Below, one piece after another: positions 8,055 to 64,000 of a stretch of DNA of 64,000 bases (within the stretch, counting starts at the first letter, position 1; every line of letters starts with the position of its first letter). The notes under the pieces are model-generated. The model had not been told where the DNA came from and did not search any database. It was given only the letters and a program-made list of their open reading frames with translations. This DNA comes from Macrostomum lignano (Eukaryota). The stretch is taken from positions 124,001 through 188,000 of the forward strand of contig NIVC01001561.1 of the NCBI GenBank assembly GCA_002269645.1. The letters are read 5' to 3'. Made by a program: the position numbers and the translations under genes.

Positions 8055-8372
8055 GGCTCACAACCGGCGAGAGGCATTACTGCCCATTCCGCCGACTCCC
8101 CTGAGCAGGCACACAAGCGCGCGGATACGTACGCAGTCATACGCACAGGCACTCACACAGAAGTGCACAGCGGCCCTAACTTCATATTATCGTTAGGCAT
8201 GTACACTTCACTGCGCCTTGGGGGGGGGGGGTTGGCTCTCAAGGCCGTTAATTGCACGAGCAGAGCCAAGCCGATATTCCAATTCAGCCCCAAATTAATG
8301 TGACTGCACTTGGAATCGAGCCTGGGTCGCTGGCACACCAGAGCCTGCGCTAGACCGCTGGGCTACGGCCCC
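8055..8372 (-). mobile_element. tRNA-derived SINE family B, near full-length copy
   Basis: Minus-strand head GGGGCCGTAGCCCAGCGG...GGCTCGATTCC (A/B boxes). Body motifs CCATTCCGC(C/T)GAC and CGT(C/T)AGGCATGTACAC recur at 28319-28402 and 34930-35137. Confidence 0.6.
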
Positions 8373-8504: not shown

Positions 8505-8510
8505 TTTATT
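8505..8510 (-). promoter_or_regulatory. Candidate polyadenylation signal of the peptide precursor gene
   Basis: AATAAA on the minus strand about 240 nt downstream of the stop codon. Confidence 0.45.
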
Positions 8511-8751: not shown

Positions 8752-9474
8752 CTAATAGTCATTCGTCGAGTCGCTGTCGTATTTCCACATTCCAGGCCAG
8801 TAGTAGGAACGCTTTCCAGATGACTCTCGGTTGAAGTTCCACATTCCAGGCCAGTAGTAGGACCGCTTTCCAGTTGACTCTCGGTTGAAGTTCCACATTC
8901 CAGGCCAGTAGTAGGACCGCTTTCCAGATGACTCTCGGTTGAAGTTCCACATTCCAGGCCAGTAGTAGGACCGCTTTCCAGTTGACTCTCGGTTGAAGTT
9001 CCACATTCCAGGCCAGTAGTAGGACCGCTTTCCAGATGACTCTCGGTTGAAGTTCCACATTCCAGGCCAGTAGTAGGACCGCTTTCCAGTTGACTCTCGG
9101 TTGAAGTTCCACATTCCAGGCCAGTAGTAGGAACGCTTTCCAGATGACTCTCGGTTGAAGTTCCACATTCCAGGCCAGTAGTAGGACCGCTTTCCAGATG
9201 ACTCTCGGTTGAAGTTCCACATTCCGGGCCAGTAGTAGCCCTTCTTGTCCAAATATTGGTTCGCTATTTGATTGCTGACTTCTCCTTCATCAGCTTCGTC
9301 ATCATCGGAAGCAGCAGGAACTGCCATTCCACAGTGTCCCAGTGCTACAATCAACAATCCCAGTATAAGGATGTGGTAGATGACTCTGGAAATGGATAAA
9401 AGTATAATTTCGTGTTAAACTTGTCAATAAAACAAAAAAAGAAAATGGAATATCCACTTTTACCCCTTATCCAT
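8752..9474 (-). CDS. Secreted multi-copy peptide (neuropeptide-type) precursor; exons 9464-9474 and 8752-9385
   Basis: ATG GAT AAG GG|gtaaaag..78-nt intron..ccag|A GTC ATC gives MDKGVIYHILILGLLIVALGHCGMA (signal-peptide-like). An acidic spacer and KK follow, then 8 x (G/S)YYWPGMWNFNRES(S/T)-G-KR and a final SYYWPGMWKYDSDSTNDY-stop. Dibasic convertase sites and Gly amide donors are the classic prohormone layout. Confidence 0.9.
8775..9240 (-). repeat. 54-bp coding tandem repeat (peptide units)
   Basis: 8 full units plus a partial ninth, nearly identical including synonymous sites. Confidence 0.95.
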
Positions 9475-9599
9475 AGTGGCTCAGTTATTATAAAGGCTGT
9501 TGCTGCTAGCTCTTGTTTCCAGTTGCTGGCTTACGCGCTCGCAATCTAGAGGTTTTGACTAGCTCATAAATGGAGGCGGGAATCGCACACCTAGGTCTC

Positions 9600-9605
9600 T
9601 TTATA
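9600..9605 (-). promoter_or_regulatory. Candidate TATA box of the peptide precursor gene
   Basis: GCTATAAAGAG on the minus strand about 130 nt upstream of the ATG. Confidence 0.3.
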
Positions 9606-11163
9606 GCTCTGCATTTTGTTTGCGAAGAGATGGGAAGAGAGAAACTAACTAGGTGGAAGAAATGTATTTACTATCAACCAATCGTGATCGTTCATAACTT
9701 TTCCCATGGCTAGACATTTATGGCTGATCATTTAGCTTTTTATCTTTAGGTTGTCCATACTATTCTGTAGTCGCAGACTTACGCGGCAATCGGGTCATGA
9801 TTGACAAAAAATAAAGCTTTTAGCTGGTTTCTTGACTAGCTACTTGGATAGTTTGTTTGGCGTGCTACATTTAAATAACGGTAATTATTTACGAGTGTCA
9901 AACAACCTATTACCACTAAAACTTCCGAACATAAAATACCTGGGTTAGGTTAACCAGACGTATCGTCCACATTCGAAGCGCTTGATAAACTGTTTCAATC
10001 GGTCGGTGTCGGCCAAGTCGGTATCATCACTCAGTTCGCATGATATATTAGTTAATAGACTACAGTGTACGATGTATTATTAATTAATACACGTATGTAT
10101 CATAATTCGAGCCAATACCCTAGCATATTTTGCATCTGTGAGCCTCATAAAATAGAAGTGTCTGTGACCGCTGTATTAGTAGGCTTTCTACTAGCTTAAG
10201 TAGAATAATAAAACAGAAGTCACAAAATATCACGTTGTATTCGGCAGGCAAACTTGGCAAGTCAGATTTAGCAAGCAAGCAGCACGCTGCCACAAGGCAA
10301 ACATCGCAACTCCCCTTTTGTGCGTCTTTTTAGTTTCATTATAAGACTTATGACAAGTCTGCCGCAATACCCTGGATAAGGTATAGCAGCAGCCGCGCTA
10401 GGGAGGCAAGCTAAGATAGGATTTGATCCGCCTTTCTTATTACTTTAGAGGAGGGTTTTAAGATAGCCATGATATAAAAGAGTAGATTGATAAACGGAGC
10501 CCCAGAAGAAACACCATAGATACCATTTTCTAATATTAGGCTTCAGTGTCCTCAGACAGTTGAATCGCATCCTGTGTGCTTTAAACACGCGCAAGCAGTC
10601 ATCAGGATATTGCCGAGCTGCATATAGAATATTGCAATACTCCCATCACAAGGCCTAATGTTTGCAGTCCACTCACGCCATCCGTCAGTTTGCATAGGCT
10701 GAAGGGAAGGATATATTTTAATATTCTCCGCAGCCCTTGGAGGACTAAACGTCAGTCCCTGAATCTGCGGTCAGTGGGTTGCCTTCGTTTTCGCTGTGCT
10801 CTGTCTACTCTGTATAGCTCACCCTGCTGAGAATTTGTAGCGAGAAGACAAAGCACTATTACATGCAACAGCACCTCATTGATCATTTGGGGTATTAAAT
10901 TTCTGGCCCCAATATTTTCAAATACATGATGCATACGCGACCATATGTATGGATTGTGGTTGACTTATTTCCAGCTGACCAGTTAGCGATACCTGTTACT
11001 TTCAGTGGCACTATATGAAAGATATGAGTAAAACCTAGAATGTCAACTTACAATGGGTGGGTGTCTGAAAAGTAGTGGGAATTTTCAACCTGACTTTTTA
11101 ACGTGAGATCCAATCCGCAGGCCAATCTCTGTGCACGAGTGCACGAGTAGTTGTTGGAGCCTA

Positions 11164-12244: not shown

Positions 12245-12850
12245 TCAGAACCAGGAGTCCTGCACCTTCGCCTTGAACTCTTCCGGTGCCTCCAGCTTCA
12301 GATTGGCCCGCCTGGTGTCATCGACACTCGTCGGGGATTCATCCTCTTCTTCGAACGCGTCTGGTTCGCCGTCGTGTTCAGCCCCGTCCTTGGCGGCGTA
12401 CTTGCGGCGGTGCTCCTCCTCGAGGCGGCGGCGTTCGACGCGGTCCCGACAGCAGATCAGGCTTTCCTCCAACTTGTGCTGCTTGGGCCGCCAGGCGTCC
12501 TCGATGCGGCCGATGCAGGGCCAGGTGTCCCTGTCGCACCAGGTGCAGATGTACACGATGATGCCCAGGCCTAGGGCCACTCCGATTATTCCGAAGGCGA
12601 TCTTCAGCATTCGGCCAGTTTCGGTTGGCTTGCAGCAGCCTTTCTCGCCGCCCACAGTGCAGCACTCCGTGCGACCCTCCTCGGCCGCTTCAGAATTCGT
12701 GCAATCCTGGTAGTTTTCCTTCGAGTAGGGCTGGTTCGAGTCCTTCAAACACTTCTCATTGTAGCCTTCTGGAAGCTCTGCCTCAGCCCCGAATGCTGGC
12801 TGCAGAAACAGCGGCAGCAACAGAAGAAGCAACGCAGACCAGTGGCGCAT
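12245..12850 (-). CDS. Shisa-like (STMC6-type) single-pass type I membrane protein, 201 aa, intronless CDS
   Basis: Signal peptide MRHWSALLLLLLPLFLQPAFG; short ectodomain with a C-C-CC-CC six-cysteine pattern (CLKD..DCTN..ECCTVGGEKGCCKP); TM IAFGIIGVALGLGIIVYIC; juxtamembrane cysteines; charged cytosolic tail; GC3-rich codons. Confidence 0.8.
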   Translation of the reverse strand: MRHWSALLLLLLPLFLQPAFGAEAELPEGYNEKCLKDSNQPYSKENYQDCTNSEAAEEGRTECCTVGGEKGCCKPTETGRMLKIAFGIIGVALGLGIIVYICTWCDRDTWPCIGRIEDAWRPKQHKLEESLICCRDRVERRRLEEEHRRKYAAKDGAEHDGEPDAFEEEDESPTSVDDTRRANLKLEAPEEFKAKVQDSWF

Positions 12851-33300: not shown

Positions 33301-36300
33301 ATGGAAAATTAGCCAAGTTAAAGACACGTACTTAAGTTTAAATACTACGATAAAGGTTTAGAATAGGAATATCTGATTTGAGGAAACAGCTGCCAACAAA
33401 ACGGAGTCCGTAACCCAGAGTAGTATAGCTTACCTTGAATTGCACGTTCTGCACTTTACCGCAGAACTTGCCGCAAAAATCTTCGTTTTTGCTAAACAGC
33501 ACTTCGTAGGCAGGAATTCGGTAATAGGCGATCCGCTTGTCGGCGCACAGCATCCAAATCACCACATCCGGGAACGAGTTCTGAGGCTGTGAGGTCGGAT
33601 TTCAGGAGGGGTTGAAACTGCTTTTAACAAACTAATACAAGCTAGGCTGTGTCTCACTGGCCATAGACTGAAATATGTATTGTGTCTTAGTGGCCATAGA
33701 CTGAATATGTATTGTGTCTTTGTGGCATTGACTGAATATGTATTGTGTCTTAGTGGCCATAGACTGAATATGTATTGTGTCTTACTGGCCATAGACTGAA
33801 ATATGTATTGTGTCTTAGTGGCCGTAGACTGAATATGTATTGTGTCTTAGTGGCCATTGACTGAATATGTATTGTGTCTTACTGGCCATAGACTGAAATA
33901 TGTATTGTGTCTTAGTGGCCGTAGACTGAATATGTATTGTGTCTTTGTGGCATTGACTGAATATGTATTGTGTCTTACTGGCCATAGACTGAATATGTAT
34001 TGTGTCTTACTGGCCATAGACTGAAATATGTATTGTGTCTTAGTGGCCGTAGACTGAATATGTATTGTGTCTTAGTGGCCATTGACTGAATATGTATTGT
34101 GTCTTACTGGCCATAGACTGAAATATGTATTGTGTCTTAGTGGCCGTAGACTGAATATGTATTGTGTCTTTGTGGCATTGACTGAATATGTATTGTGTCT
34201 TACTGGCCATAGACTGAATATGTATTGTGTCCTACTGGCCATAGACTGAATATGTATTGTGTCTTAGTGGCATTCACTGAATATGTATTGTGTCTTAGTG
34301 GCCATAGACTGAATAGGTATTGTGTTTTACTGGTCATAGACGGAATATGTATTTTACTGGTCATAGACGGAATATGTGTTTTACTGGCCATAGACTGAAT
34401 ATGTATTGTCTTACTGGCCATAGACTGAATAGATCGTGTCTTATTAGCCAAACTAGCAGACTGAATAGATGTCTTACTGGCCTGGTCAGAGACTGAATAT
34501 GTAGCTAATGTGTCTTACCAGATTTTGTACCTACGCAGACTCAATGCTCGTTTTAAGAGGAAAGTAGTAAAGAGTCAGCAAGCAACAATCGAGTCTGTTC
34601 CCCAGCACCTTACCTCGATTGCGATGGCTCGAATCTGATTTCTAAACGAATCCAACTCGTTGACGGCCTCCTCAACCGAGGTGCACTCTTCGCGCAGCTT
34701 GCTGGCCGCGCGACGAATGTTTTTTAATTCGTTTTCGCGCAACGACTGCAGGTTGAGGTCGAGCTCGTTGGCTGGACTCTGGCCCGGCTCCCATTCGGGC
34801 AAGTCTTTGCTGAAGGAGGGAGTTTTGAATAATCCATGTATCCAACTGATAGATTCAAGATTCACTGGTCGGTTTTATCGAACTATATATTTGTCTCGGA
34901 ACGCCAAATTGCCATCGGGCGACATCGTCACACAACCAGCACTGACGGCAACACTGGCCATTCCGCTGACTCCTGACCACATGCAAGCGCGTCAATACTA
35001 CCCGCAGGCACGCACTCATGCACACGCTCATACAGGGTGTACAGTGGCACTTTGACTTTCTAATCGTCAGGCATGTACACTGTTGACGTAACGGAATCAA
35101 ACTGGGGGTCGTGTTTACCACTGAGCCGCTCCGCCCCTTATTGAGCTTAGAAGTGTACGTTAATCTTTTTTAGGATTACCCAATGTGCTCTTGCACTTGT
35201 TGCTGGCTGCATTAAAACATTGGAGAACTTACTTGCACATCACAATGAGATCATCTATGGCAGCGATGGTGAACTGGGCTTGCTCTTCGTCCGGCAATTT
35301 GGCCTTAATCGCCACGTGGATCTTCTCGATGTTCTCGTCCTGGACGCGTTCGGAGGATGATGTGAGAGCGCGTTTTTTTTTTCAAGAGAAGAGTGGGCGC
35401 GCTCTCATCTCTTTCCCTCACCCTATTCTGTTTCCTAATCAAAGAAGAGAATGTTTTCCTTTAGCCCAAGCCCAACTTTAGCAGCGCCTTCTTAATGCGT
35501 CTTAGCATTCTGGAAACATCAACTTGATAAGTTTGTGAGTCATACGAGACTTTACTCGATAGCCCAGAAGATGCTGCCAGTTTAGCTTTTAAAAAGGCTG
35601 AATACTTTCACATTTTTTACCATTGCTACGAATTGTCTGTGAGAGATTCAATTTAGGCTACTGAGAAAAGTAGACCAATAAAGATTTGAGTCGCAAAATA
35701 TCTCACATAGCCCGAAAAATGTTGCATAAAAGAAACGTCTGTGCACACTAAGAGTGATGGGTGAGGACGGCGGGTGGCTATGACTGACTGAAGAAGGCAA
35801 AAAAGCCGGAAACCGGTCTCGGTCTGTCTGGCTCGACCCCCACCTTTTGTGGTCACATTATGCCACATTGACTGTCAAACCTAACGCTATCCTGAACCTA
35901 TAACCCTATAGCCTATAACTTGTCGGCAGTCTATCGTCGCGCTCTGAATACTAATTGGCGCGATCTAGTGTAGCTGTTCTTGCTAAATAAACAGTATAAA
36001 CTATAAAGAACTGAAGTGACAATCACCAGCTTCTCCAGGATTCTGTGCAGAAAATTGATGGAGTGCAGCCGGAATCCGATGTCCTCCCACTGGCTCTCCA
36101 CCACCGTACATGGCTTGGTGTTGCCCCACGGCAGGAAGTAAAAGTGCACGCCGTCGAACACCGCATTAGTCGGCTGCGTGGTCGACGCAGTCGGCGGTAC
36201 CGACTCGTCCAGCTTGTTGCCATAGTTACCGATGCTTATCTCAAATTCAACTGGCGCGTCCACCTCGGAGATCATACTGGCGCTGGAGAAGGCCGCGTGC

Positions 36301-39300: not shown

Positions 39301-42300
39301 TAGCAGGCAGACACAAAGACACAGGCAGCAGACAGACACAAAGACACAGCTAGCAGGCAGACACAAAGACACAGGCAGCAGACAGACACAAAGACACAGC
39401 TAGCAGGCAGACACAAAGATACAGCTAGCAGACAGGCACAAAGACACAGCTAGCAGACAGACACAAAGACACAGCTAGCAGGCAGACACAAAGACACAGG
39501 CAGCAGACAGACACAAAGGCACAAAGACACAGCTAGCAGACAGACACAAAGACACAGCTAGCAGACAGACACAAAGACACAGGGAGCAGACAGGCACAAA
39601 GACACAGGCAGGCAGACACAAAGACACAGCTAGCAGACAGTCACAAAGACAAAAGCAGGCAGAAGCTCACGGGCGCTTCATCTCCGGGTCCCAGGATGAC
39701 TGCGCAGATTTTCAGGTAGCCCTTGGCGCCGCCCTGCGGATCCTCGGGGTCGCTGAGCAGCAGCCACTTGTTCAGGAAGACGTGACCGTCCTCCTCGTAC
39801 AGCATGCCGAGGTCGAATTTGAAGGCGCCAATCATGGCGTCCGAGCGCAGACGGCGAGAGTTGAACACCTGATTGCGGTGGATTGGTGCGAGAAGCGAGC
39901 AACGTCAGGTGGGGAACTGAGGAACTGCAGAGCAGAAATCAATCAATAAACCTAAAAACTCACCCCGCATTCGACCAGCTCTTCCATGAGATCGGCCGGA
40001 GACACGTTGAAGTTAAAGAAGAACGTCTCGCCCCAGTATGGCGAATTGGTGGACTTTTTAATCCTGGTCTGCTTCATCTGGTTGTAGCAGGTCACTCGGC
40101 ACACCGGGCTGATGTTGGCGCCCTGCAGCTGGCGGGCTTCCACAATGCGGATGCGGATCTGGAGGGTGACGGCGCAGCGCGGTGGCAGAGATTTATTCAA
40201 CTGCCTCCCGTAACAACCCACGCTGCTTCCCGTAACAACCCACGCTGCTTCCCGTAACAACCCACACTGCTTCCCGTAAAAACCCACACTGCTTCCCGTA
40301 ACAACCCACACTGCCTCCCGTAACAACCCACGCTGTTTCCCGTAACAACCCACGCTGCTTCCCGTAACAACCCATAGCCTCCCGTAACAACCCATAGCCT
40401 CCTGTAACAACCCATACTGCCTACCGTAACAATCCATAGCCTCCCGTAACAACCCACACTGCCTCCCGTAACAACCCACACTGCCTCCCGTAACACCCCA
40501 CACTGCCTCCCGTAACAACCCACGCTGCTTCCCGTAACAACCCACGCTGCTTCCCGTAACAACCCACGCTGCTTCCCGTAACAACCCACGCTGCTTCCCG
40601 TAACAACCCACGCTGCTTCCCGTAACAACCCACACTGCTTCCCGTAACAACCCATAGCCTCCCGTAACAACCCACACTGCCTCCCGTAACAACCCACACT
40701 GCCTCCCGTAACAACCCACACTGCCTCCCGTAACAACCCACACTGCCTCCCGTAACAACCCACACTGCCTCCCGTAACAACCCACACTGCCTCCCGTAAC
40801 AACCCACACTGCCTCCCGTAACAACCCACACTGCCTCCCGTAACAACCCACACTGCCTCCCGTAACAACCCACACTGCCTCCCGTAACAACCCACACTGC
40901 CTCCCGTAACAACCCACACTGCCTCCCGTAACAACCCACACTGCCTCCCGTAACACCCCACACTGCCTCCCGTAACAACCCACACCGACCCATAGCCTCC
41001 TCGTAGCAAAGGAATTTTCGACTTCATCGTCTCTAAAGATGTCTACTCTATATCTATATTAAAGAAGTCATTTTATTTAATAATCTAAAAATTTTATAAT
41101 CGTAATCTTAAATTTAACATTATACTTTAAGAAACGCTGCAGTATACTTTATGATAAGTAGTAAGGTTAAGACACTGTAGAATATATTGCATACCTACAG
41201 TCTACCTGAAATGAATTCTAACCCCGCCCCAATGTACACATAGCTACCTGCTAGTGCACAATAAAAGGTTTGCGAGTTTAATATATCAGGCCAACAATAT
41301 GCGGACAAGTGTAAAAAAATTGAGCTTGATCTTAATGCAAAGAATTGAAGCAAAGAGAGAACAGAGAGCCAGATTTCTATAGTTTCTCAATCCTACTCTC
41401 CCAGAACACTTTTTCCTGGTCGATCAGAACCGCGTCACAACTTTGGGAATAGCTGCTCTCCGCGTCAAAAATTGTTCCCAAAAAAAGAAGTGTTGAGAAA
41501 TAAAATACTTTTTTCGCTGTGCTGACCGCCCCCGCTCTGCGAGAGTGGCTGCGATCGCACCTCTACCTACAGTCTACCGATTTCTGACTGGCACTCACTG
41601 CCGCTCTCGGGCAGGGATTTCTGGGGTGGGGGTTATGGAACAACAGGTGTGCCTGTTGGTTCCAAAATCGCATGGCCCCAGAGCTCATGAGCTGCAGTGG
41701 GCTGAATGAAATGGCAAATGTAGGGAGTTGCGCTAAGCTGCACTTCCGACTCCGCTATATTGAGTGCTGCTTCAAATCTGGGAGAGAGAGAGAGACAAGA
41801 CAAGAGAGAATCTCCATGGCAACATGCACCTTCTCGAACAGTCCCCCTCTCTCCGTATCTAGACCGGAAGTGAAAGACGAGAGAAAGGATTAAGGGACAG
41901 TTTCAGAAGTGAATGCTAGGACAAATTCTGGCCTGCCGCTACCATAGAGCCCAGCTTAGCAACTAAGAGATTAGGAGCCGCCCTACACTCGTACAGCCCC
42001 GCTCTTCAGCGCCCAGTAAAAGGGGATTGGGTCAAAAAATTGGTGTGTAAAAGGCAAAATCGGCTGCCAAACTGAATGTACGCTGCCCTGCTCCGCAGCC
42101 TGTGCATGCCTGCACTCCCCTGCCCAGTCAATATCGATTGTCAACAGCAAATAATTGCGCACTGAAAGAAGACTGAAAGAAAAAAAACGGGATCGAGAGC
42201 CGAGGTGGGGGGGGCGAACCTGTGAGTCTCTGGGTTGATTTGGTATTGAGAGAATAGCAAAGTACGTACGGGTTAAATTCCGATACAACTGCGATGTTAT

Positions 42301-45300
42301 TAAGTGCTATTTTTAGCAACTAGAGCCATACTGTATCGGCTCAGTTAGATTGCTTCTAAAATGGCGCATTTTTCATTTTTTTTTCTGCAATTTTGCTTTC
42401 ACTTTGCATTTGCCGGGGTGCTACATGCTTAGCTGCAGGGCTGTCCCGGAGGGGACACAGCGGGAAGGCGCGGGCGCCCATTCCGCTAGGTGCTACATGC
42501 ATTCAGGTCTCAATGGGAGACACCCATATGCTTCTAATGTCTCCAACTATTGTTTGCTTCGGTTGAGAATAAAAGAACGTGCATGCCTTGAAATGAACTC
42601 AAAAAAGAATCTATCTGACTGTGCAGTCTGCTATTTCTATTATTCATCTCTGCTCACATCTTGGTATATTCTTCTATCAAAACAGAAATTCCTGATACTT
42701 GTAAACACCCCACCCAGGCAGAGCACAGTTGGCTCCGTCTAGAGTACATCGTAGTCCATTGATATTCATACATAGTCAATGTATCCGGTGTACTCGGAGA
42801 GCCTTACGCATCAACCTTGTCTATAGTGTCGGGGATTTACCATGCGCTGGTTTTTGCTAAATTTAATAAAAGTTATTTAATAAAAGTTATTTAATAAAAA
42901 CCTCGAAAATATTCTGCCTAGTTTCTATCAGGTCCCTTCCATTCTGTCTGGTTTCTATCAGGTCCCTTCCATTCTACCTGGTTTCTATCTGGTCCCTTCC
43001 ATTCTGCCTGGTTTCTATCTGGTCCCTTCCATTCTGCCTGGTTTCTATCAGGTCCCTTCCATTCTGCCTGGTTTCTATCAGGTCCCTTCCATTCTGCCTG
43101 GTTTCTATCAGGTCCCTTCCATTCTGCCTGGTTTCTATCAGGTCCCTTCCATTCTGTCTGGTTTCTATCAGGTCCCTTCCATTCTGCCTGGTTTCTATCT
43201 GGTCCCTTCCATTCTGCCTGGTTTCTATCTGGTCCCTTCCATTCTACCTGGTTTCTATCTGGTCCCTTCCATTCTGCCTGATTTCTATCTGGTCCCTTCC
43301 ATTCTTCCTGGTTTCTATCTGGTCCCTTCCATTCTGCCTGATTTCTATCTGGTCCCTTCCATTCTGCCTGATTTCTATCTGGTCCCTTCCATTCTGCCTG
43401 GTTTCTATCTGGTCCCTTCCATTCTGCCTGGTTTCTATCTGGTCCCTTCCATTCTGCCTGGTTTCTATCTGGTCCCTTCCATTCTGCCTGGTTTCTATCT
43501 GGTCCCTTCCATTCTACCTGGTTTCTATCTGGTCCCTTCCATTCTGCCTGGTTTCTATCTGGTCCCTTCCATTCTGCCTGGTTTCTATCTGGTCCCTTCC
43601 ATTCTGCCTGGCTTCAATCTGGTCCCTTCAATTCTGCCTGGTTTCTATCTGGTCCCTTCCATTCTGCCTGGTTTCTATCTGGTCCCTTCCATTCTGCCTG
43701 GTTTCTATCAAGTCCCTTCCATTCTGCCTGGTTTCTATCTGGTCCCTTCCATTCTGCCTGGTTTCTATCAGGTCCCTTCCATTCTGCCTGGTTTCTATCA
43801 GGTCCCTTCCATTCTGCCTGGTTCCTTTCATTCTGCCTGGTTCCTTCCACTCTACTTGGTTCCTATCTGACTCCTTCTACCTGGTTTCTATCTGATCCCT
43901 TCCATCCTGCCTGGTCTCTTCCATTATCCCTGGTCCCTTTTATTCTGGCTGGTTCCTTCCATTCTATCTGATCCCTTCCGTCCTGCCTGGTCTCTTCCAT
44001 TATCCCTGGTTCCTTCCATTCTGCCTGGTTCCTTCCATTCTACCTGGCTCCTTCCCTTCTACCTGGTTCCTCCTTCTTGATCTGGTTCCTTTTATTCTTG
44101 AGCAGACTTGAGCTGTTCTTTACTAGTCCATAGAAATCGCTGATTCAAGCTCCACTATTTGAAGTTGACTTTTTCCCTCATCTTGAGCCCCGTCCATTCA
44201 GCTCTACTCCCTGCTGTAAGCCCTTCGCAACCATCTCAAAGCCGCACCTGAAAGTCCTGCAGCTTCGTGCTCAGCTTGGCCCGAGTCTTTCGCTTTGCCG
44301 CTCCGCCGACGTTTCGCTTTCGCCGCGATTTTTTGCCGCTGCCGCCGCCGCCACCGCCGCCGCCGTCAGCCTGATCGAAGGCCTCTTCTTCCTCGTCGTC
44401 ATCTTCGGCATCCATTGTTTGGCCGCCGCCGCCACCGCTCGGCGAAGAGTCAGTCGTGTCTGCATTGAGTCAGTTCACGCAAGTAGGACGGCTCACGATT
44501 ATTTGTTGATAGATAGATAGATATAATTAGTCACGACAGATAATATATTACGAGCCCCGTCCTACAAGCTACTTTGGGCCTTGTTACATAATTTATTGAC
44601 AGTAAGAACAGCTAGAACTAAAGAGCTTTACACCAATTCACAAAAGTACCGGCAATAAAAATGTGATTTACATGTGCATACACACGAACTGTTTTATCAG
44701 CAAAGTTTATGATTATGTACAACACTATCTAAAACCTAAAAGACTTACAATGCACTCCTGTTCCTAAAATATTTATTTAGTTGCATGTAAACGTGTGTCT
44801 AAGCAGTTATTGTTATAGATAAAGAAACTGTGATTTCAAGGCGCTACCTTTTCCTTTCGGTCCAACATAGACGATCATCACTTTGACAGTTGCCTGAAAT
44901 TTAGGGTGAATTGTTGCCTTTATAGTTTCTGTAAGCTTTCTGATTATAAAATATCGCCAAGCCTCAGGCTGACGCACCCCGACGGCTCTCTTGTTGGCAT
45001 CCTGCAGCGGAGCGTTCACTTCCATCTCGGACTTTCCGCCTTTGACCAGGTCTTTGAGAGCAATTTCACACATGCCAAGCAGTCTGTGAATTTAACCATG
45101 AGTAATTGTTGTGGATTAGAATAAAAACAAATCGTTTGAATTTAAAGTTTACTTACTTGTCCGGCCCAATTGTTTCATGGTCTTTCACTGTCACTGTCAG
45201 TTTATCATCTGGGCTTAGAGGCGGGCCCAAATCCAGCTCAATTTTCTCCTTCCAAACTGGGTTTAAATCATTGTCAATGACCTTTGTCTGACCCTTCAGT

Positions 45301-48242: not shown

Positions 48243-64000
<15,758 letters not shown>

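Follow-up and report, generated by a model that had tools for sequence, protein, structure and literature searches.

The stretch analysed here (the window) comprises 64,000 nt of contig NIVC01001561.1 and carries, on its minus strand, a two-exon gene for a predicted multi-copy peptide precursor whose units share the core YYWPGMW. A preliminary description of this DNA had proposed a tiny first coding exon that completes a signal peptide, an acidic pro-region closed by KK, eight units ending in G-KR and a ninth, non-amidated copy. We re-read the minus strand and rebuilt the model. Exon 2 (9385-8752, minus strand, 634 nt) joins the first coding exon to give, after splicing, a coding sequence (CDS) of 645 nt and a protein of 214 residues. 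All coordinates of the 11-nt exon and the 78-nt intron were reproduced from the sequence, the counts of the units (1+4+3) were exact, and SYYWPGMWKYDSDSTNDY runs straight into the stop codon. We conclude that the two-exon gene is real and was correctly described (Table 1).

The putative intron has a GC content of 26%, compared to 50% for the CDS. Its retention would yield MDKG followed by a stop codon, and initiation at the first in-frame ATG inside exon 2 (M24) would give a product without a signal peptide. The predicted signal peptide, MDKGVIYHILILGLLIVALGHCGMA, has a core (ILILGLLIVAL) with a mean Kyte-Doolittle hydropathy of 3.46, and Gly and Ala occupy positions -3 and -1. At the other end of the gene, AATAAA lies about 245 nt past the stop codon and is the sole canonical poly(A) signal in the 350 nt that follow it. 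A two-codon upstream open reading frame (ORF; ATG AGC TAG, 9565-9567, minus strand) is found between the TATA box and the main ATG, and would fall within the 5' untranslated region (UTR) if transcription begins about 30 nt after the TATA box.

Table 1. Features of the peptide-precursor gene, in window coordinates and in the direction of the gene.
Feature	Position	Strand	Basis
TATAAA box, 131 nt 5' of ATG, putative core promoter	9600..9605	-	direct reading; function inferred
First coding exon, 11 nt, ATGGATAAGGG (Met-Asp-Lys-Gl...)	9464..9474	-	direct reading; ATG = 9474-9472
Putative intron, 78 nt, phase 2, GTAAAAGT...ATTTCCAG	9386..9463	-	GT...AG, pyrimidine tract ahead of AG; splice inferred
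Part of exon 2, completes predicted signal peptide, residues 4-25	9322..9385	-	hydropathy, -3/-1 rule, translation; cleavage predicted after GMA
Acidic pro-region VPAASDDDEADEGEVSNQIANQYLD, then predicted KK cleavage site	9241..9321	-	translation; isoelectric point (pI) 4.05
Eight tandem 54-nt units, each (G/S)YYWPGMWNFNRES(S/T)-Gly-Lys-Arg	8809..9240	-	Tandem Repeats Finder (TRF) and codon table
Ninth, divergent unit SYYWPGMWKYDSDSTNDY, without Gly or dibasic site; predicted free-acid C-terminal peptide	8755..8808	-	
Stop codon TAG	8752..8754	-	direct reading
AATAAA, putative 3' end, 3' UTR of about 250 nt	8505..8510	-	direct reading; function inferred

TRF resolved the array into a 54-nt period with 8.4 copies (97% matches, score 870). 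The eight units are of three types, one GYYWPGMWNFNRESS, four SYYWPGMWNFNRESS and three SYYWPGMWNFNREST, each followed by G-KR, and they differ from one another only in the first codon (GGC/TCC), a Pro codon (CCC/CCT), a Ser/Thr codon (TCT/ACT) and a synonymous Arg codon (CGG/CGT). ST and SS endings alternate through units 3-8 with a higher-order period of 108 nt, and therefore the last expansion used a 108-nt double unit. A second frame across the array is also open (153 aa). Minisatellites are frequent elsewhere in the window as well: at least 17 further arrays were counted, whose periods range from 12 to 76 nt and whose copies number up to about 90. Because of these arrays and the second open frame, a repeat that can be translated does not in itself prove a gene; gene status therefore rests on homologues in other genomes, which are not repetitive and have diverged in DNA yet carry the same peptide core.

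The other arrays lie within 22966-63891 (for example at 40200-40985, 42911-43919, 49080-49567, 55079-55803 and 60630-62879). They are apparently mostly intronic in the ferlin and Groucho genes described below, and several give rise to spurious ORFs as long as 150-340 aa. A minisatellite also occurs in the intron of a Macrostomum lignano homologue (the P0002 gene introduced below), at about 10200-10520 of its locus (L001). This tendency of the genome to form minisatellites may have driven amplification of the peptide unit.

Relatives of the window protein are few. A word-indexed search of 5.8 billion proteins returned two matches, both from M. lignano. The first (UniRef A0A1I8HFB1; P0001), automatically named 'Salivary secreted protein', is a partial record that contains KR-GYYWPGMWNFRNAD in at least five identical copies, and no contig is recorded as encoding it. 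The second (PAA81773.1 / BOX15_Mlig013514g1; P0002) carries three divergent units and ends in a tail that contains Cys. Run exhaustively over 1.84 billion cluster representatives with the window ORF, phmmer found as true relatives only P0001 (E = 4.7e-22), P0002 (2.9e-10) and a further protein, P0009 (4e-7); the remaining 30 matches (P0003-P0008, P0011-P0034) were unrelated repeat ORFs. A profile search with the unit alignment recovered P0009 and otherwise only a retrotransposon integrase fragment. P0009, the orthologue of P0002, is encoded on a 926-nt, intron-less and transcript-like Logan contig (SRR30276804, L004) from an unidentified sample, and the full ORF contains a predicted signal peptide, four units and a tail like that of P0002. 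Hydrophobic N-termini, which are predicted signal peptides, are present in the window protein, P0001, P0002 and the full L004 ORF.

These four proteins form a provisional family, with 21 units in all. WPGMW is invariant in all 21, following a small residue and two mostly aromatic residues, and every unit has a dibasic pair (KR, RR or KK) exactly three residues before the first Trp. The core continues with [NHQRK]-[FYH] and then an Arg, usually within three residues; beyond this point the tails vary. Unit spacing among the relatives is 16, 18 or 24-36 residues, and the spacers are acidic in P0002 and P0009. Between the genes, the codons used for Pro, Gly, Lys and Arg show synonymous differences, and CDS GC content is 50% in the window gene versus 65% in the relatives; conservation is therefore at the protein level. 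Thus, the homologues support the proposal that the N-terminal aromatic core is the conserved part of the peptide, and the divergent ninth copy retains it. The view that the family had gone unrecognised holds in part: no described family was matched, but the sequence is not unique to the window, since uncharacterised relatives were already public as A0A1I8HFB1, PAA81773.1 and one Logan transcript assembly. Together, the searches suggest a small family that is apparently restricted to macrostomids, with unnamed database members and no description found within the scope of our searches.

The relatives resemble the window protein in different ways. P0001 is the best database match (64-71% identity over the array, E 1e-21), and its identical units likewise start with GYYWPGMWNF and follow KR. 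In contrast to the window gene, these units are 16 residues long (GYYWPGMWNFRNAD-KR) and have no Gly, hence are not amidated, and the signal peptide and pro-region are unrelated. P0002 and P0009 share with the window protein a predicted signal peptide, dibasic-flanked units and the x-Y/S/T-Y/F-WPGMW core, but have three to four divergent units separated by long, variable and partly acidic spacers. Gly-KR ends are present in one of three units in P0002, one of four in P0009/L004 and none in P0001, where units end in ...RNAD-KR. Because the Gly amide donor varies among relatives, predicted amidation is a trait of the window gene and not of the family, and the idea of a family-wide amide had to be abandoned in light of A0A1I8HFB1.

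P0002 and P0009 additionally share a conserved C-terminal segment, YWLGKACGETGDxxACS(I/V)LNG (L001 10925-11040, L004 545-650), which follows a dibasic site (KR in P0002, RR in P0009) and may represent a further, disulfide-bridged peptide. No remnant of this Cys-containing tail was found in the window gene or anywhere else in the window.

The comparison of exon structure covered the window gene and the P0002 gene. In the latter (M. lignano contig NIVC01000471, L001), the first coding exon measures 17 nt, a phase-2 intron of about 560 nt comes next, and a TATAAA lies 106 nt 5' of the ATG. This matching tiny exon 1 and phase-2 intron provide indirect support for the predicted splice in the window gene. 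Alignment of the two promoters revealed nothing alignable except the TATA box. The neighbourhood is also shared: ferlin exons at 21249-21133 and 19219-19103 (minus strand) of the window are collinear with L001 2254-2370 and 2485-2601, with the same strand relation, and at both loci the peptide gene lies 7-10 kb downstream of the ferlin exons on the same strand. This synteny holds for the M. lignano loci L001 and L003, and was not seen in the 10-kb flank of L002. Between the window and M. lignano, the syntenic ferlin exons show approximately 82-86% identity in DNA and 87-92% in protein, with differences at 29 of 78 third positions (37%), whereas L001 and L003, as subgenome copies of M. lignano, agree at 232 of 234 positions over these exons. 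The divergence of these exons therefore indicates that the window is not among the three near-identical M. lignano copies, and points to either a related species or an old paralogous segment as its source.

We consider it somewhat probable that the window gene encodes a lineage-restricted, prohormone-type precursor of neuro-endocrine signalling peptides with an N-terminal aromatic core. Five features, taken together, are characteristic of a prohormone that is processed by convertases, a carboxypeptidase and the amidating enzyme: the predicted signal peptide, the acidity of the pro-region, the lack of Cys downstream of the signal peptide in the window protein, the strictly conserved dibasic sites that bound short units with variable and often acidic spacers, and the Gly-Lys-Arg ends. 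The variable spacing of the units and the acidic spacers match the pattern of a prohormone and do not fit a fold that depends on repeat register.

According to this model, the 214-residue preproprotein would enter the secretory pathway via its 25-residue signal peptide. Subtilisin-like prohormone convertases would then cut after KK52 and after every KR, a carboxypeptidase would trim the basic residues, and the exposed C-terminal Gly would be converted to an amide by peptidylglycine alpha-amidating monooxygenase. The predicted products are eight 15-residue amides, namely one GYYWPGMWNFNRESS-NH2 (monoisotopic mass 1891.81), four SYYWPGMWNFNRESS-NH2 (1921.82) and three SYYWPGMWNFNREST-NH2 (1935.84), together with the free-acid 18-mer SYYWPGMWKYDSDSTNDY (2276.90) and an acidic N-terminal propeptide. 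The active determinant would be the N-terminal x-[YST]-[YF]-W-P-G-M-W-[NHQRK]-[FYH], with an Arg usually no more than three residues on, and the short tail and amide, which vary between lineages, would probably tune stability. The peptides would most likely be neuronal or endocrine intercellular signals that act on a putative receptor. The nine-copy array would have arisen by recent tandem amplification of a single unit in a minisatellite-prone genome. More tentatively, the family may constitute a signalling system that is restricted to Macrostomum or Macrostomorpha and lacks a counterpart in other Bilateria, in which a dedicated receptor recognises the N-terminal core instead of an amidated C-terminus. 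The turnover in precursor architecture would then reflect a part played in how these hermaphrodites reproduce or interact with mates, such as that of a seminal or pheromonal peptide; we raise the whole as a possibility with the odds against it.

Several observations weigh against a signalling precursor. Exact-sequence look-ups of the window ORFs found no record, and the gene is known from its sequence alone. That sequence fits a neuronal and a glandular origin alike. The amidation signal is not conserved across the relatives, and the copy number may be recent, variable or mis-assembled, the window being rich in minisatellites. In addition, one of five single-sequence AlphaFold2 models is a confident beta-hairpin meander that resembles single-layer beta-sheet proteins, and the Tyr/Trp richness of the window protein and the Tyr-rich stretches of P0002 (YGERYYDYYGG and a YYYYYD end) are seen too in secreted structural proteins.

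The alternative that survives best, which we nevertheless judge unlikely, keeps the same processing but makes the product exocrine. Glands (prostate or seminal-fluid, pharyngeal, epidermal or rhabdite) would express the precursor, and the peptides would leave the body to serve as a pheromone, as a seminal peptide that manipulates the mate, or in defence or against microbes. Multi-copy, KR-flanked precursors are known to serve exocrine peptides as well, such as yeast alpha-factor and insect apidaecin, and nothing in the sequence requires neurons. Moreover, the architecture has changed fast between relatives, with three to four divergent units and a tail that contains Cys in P0002 and P0009, and nine (window) or at least five (P0001) identical units in the others, and such turnover is typical of reproductive and defence genes. 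The gene IDs of the homologue are absent from the supplementary tables of three M. lignano expression papers. An antimicrobial role in particular is at odds with the near-neutral peptides (pI 5.7-6.0), unlike most antimicrobial peptides, which are cationic.

Less plausible still is an uncleaved, secreted repeat protein, whose Tyr/Trp-rich 18-residue units would build a beta-hairpin array, a single-layer sheet or a cross-linkable material (eggshell, cement, adhesive or functional amyloid). Tyr and Trp make up 11% and 9.5% of the mature window protein, which lacks His and Cys. The best AlphaFold2 model is a regular meander with two strands per unit and a mean predicted local distance difference test (pLDDT) score of 77, reaching about 90 or above in the array, and Foldseek matched it to the CPAP G-box, engineered OspA single-layer sheets and MORN repeats with E-values down to 2e-7. 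These matches have template modelling scores of 0.45-0.5, root-mean-square deviations of 6-8 Å and at most 10% identity, and are thus generic matches of topology. The other four models were not confident (pLDDT 54, 52, 38 and 34), the prediction relied on the single sequence with no alignment, and models of this kind readily result from perfect repeats. Because P0002 gave no confident fold (pLDDT 47.5) and unit spacing is not conserved, the beta-meander is probably an artefact of perfect periodicity. The range of spacings among the relatives is incompatible with a conserved repeat register, and the dibasic pair at a fixed distance in 21 of 21 units, the acidic spacers and the Gly-KR ends are expected under selection for cleavage, not for folding.

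We regard it as highly unlikely that there is no functional gene at all, and that a minisatellite has expanded inside an old or decaying ORF or an assembly artefact has produced the array. The abundance of other arrays in the window, several with long spurious ORFs, and the second open frame would suit this explanation, as would the 97% DNA identity between units, which makes the expansion very recent. Nevertheless, the period is divisible by three, the frame runs unbroken from ATG to stop, and a canonical splice alone creates the signal peptide. The unit encodes precisely the motif that is conserved in other genomes, the divergent ninth unit retains the core, and TATAAA and AATAAA are sensibly spaced.

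Finally, the motif could be what remains of an integrase from a Ty3/gypsy retrotransposon; the H2C2 zinc-binding domain of such enzymes can contain ...YYWPGM.... The only Pfam-A match of the window protein at E<=1 was to this domain (Integrase_H2C2, PF17921), with 16.9 bits against a cut-off of 25.5. This match spans 11 residues (window 8755-8790, protein residues 195-205) and profile positions 31-41 of a His2-Cys2 zinc-binding domain of about 59 residues. Two database matches, P0004 and P0035, are integrase-related, and a metagenome scan produced 161 pattern matches, of which the one confirmed was a Ty3/gypsy integrase that reads SRNYYWPGMWRFVKEYVRTCETC (L005 327-368). The occurrence of YYWPGMW within this domain gives rise to sub-threshold Integrase_H2C2 matches and to false positives in motif searches. 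We rejected the domain as a coincidence of motif: the similarity extends over 7-10 residues only and includes no His/Cys zinc ligands, the locus has no rve domain, long terminal repeats or other element parts, L005 was picked by pattern from an enormous collection and has no statistical weight, and no phylogenetically intermediate sequence was found, such that this reading is effectively refuted as a description of the present gene and an integrase fragment as the distant source of the peptide would be at most speculative.

Elsewhere in the window are two genes with many introns filled with tandem repeats. The ferlin gene (19103-41000, minus strand) encodes a dsrm_Ferlin domain (2e-27), C2 domains and a DysF-like region, and a Groucho/TLE co-repressor gene (48267-63901, plus strand) has TLE_N at 48267 (6e-56) and WD40 at 62930. 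Between the peptide gene and ferlin lies an ORF of 201 aa (12248-12850, minus strand), whose product starts with a signal peptide (MRHWSALLLLLLPLFLQPAFG) and continues with an ectodomain rich in Cys, a single transmembrane helix and an acidic tail. Pfam gave no match for this protein, and the corresponding syntenic interval of M. lignano holds no counterpart. A dispersed repeat of about 45-60 nt (79-89% identity) occurs at window positions 8162-8224, 35037-35081 and 56256-56302, at L002 20483-20541 and at L003 20694-20755, and probably belongs to a small mobile element that the window and the M. lignano loci both carry. ARAGORN detected no tRNA, so the repeat is not one, and Rfam gave no landmark in the window either.

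If the peptides are made, flatworm biology would gain a peptide family that is undescribed and restricted to one clade. For Macrostomum lignano, stable transgenesis has been reported, and therefore expression analysis, knock-down and receptor matching are practical in that species. The family is unusual in that the conserved part is N-terminal and a seven-residue core is common to very different precursor layouts, which have either three to four divergent units and a Cys-containing tail, or five to nine identical units with or without an amide donor. It thereby offers a compact case for the evolution of precursor copy number and C-terminal modification. The general view of peptide signalling is unchanged, and the proposed mechanism is standard. 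Clade-restricted multi-copy peptide precursors turn up routinely in invertebrate genomes, and such lineage-restricted peptides reportedly occur in xenacoelomorphs.

We compared the family with known peptide systems. Beyond the integrase match, the only Pfam-A match at E<=1 was of P0001 to Neil1-DNA_bind (14.7 bits, cut-off 25); P0002 had none, and no protein reached any Pfam gathering threshold. PDB sequences gave no match to the window protein. A full-text literature search with the core motif returned no relevant paper (YWPGM retrieved one unrelated preprint), in a scope that did not include the flatworm neuropeptide catalogues of Koziol 2016 and McVeigh 2009, and a search by the gene and UniProt IDs of the relatives found no paper. 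The main text of the study of planarian prohormones by Collins 2010 contains none of WPG, YYW, GMW or YWP. Within these sources, the statement in the preliminary description that no described family matches is upheld.

Individual families could be set aside on their motifs. APGWamide requires a terminal x-Pro-Gly-Trp followed by Gly and a dibasic site, whereas here P-G is followed by M-W-N-F-N-R-E-S-S and the amide donor comes after Ser/Thr. The MIP / allatostatin-B / Wamide peptides require W-x6-W and an amidated C-terminal Trp; the present units have W-x3-W and no C-terminal Trp. CCK / sulfakinin requires Y-G-(H/W)-M-(D/R)-F-amide, and G-M-W-N-F resembles G-W-M-D-F only loosely. After the Phe come N-R-E-S-S here, and R, D-R or S-R in the relatives, but never Gly. 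Precursors of the pedal peptide / orcokinin type are also multi-copy, with mostly non-amidated peptides of 13-20 residues and conservation that extends beyond an amidated C-terminus. They share no motif by eye and no Pfam match with the window protein, and are set apart here without direct comparison to reference sequences. The classical multi-copy amidated precursors (FMRFamide/FLP, APGWamide, TRH and cnidarian GLWamide types) have no sequence similarity to the window protein and no Pfam match to it, but share its overall plan of a signal peptide, an acidic pro-region and near-identical short peptides that end in Gly and a dibasic site. It is the amidated C-terminus that is conserved in those families and activates the receptor. 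In contrast, the YYWPGMW family is conserved at the N-terminus, and the amide is dispensable across its members.

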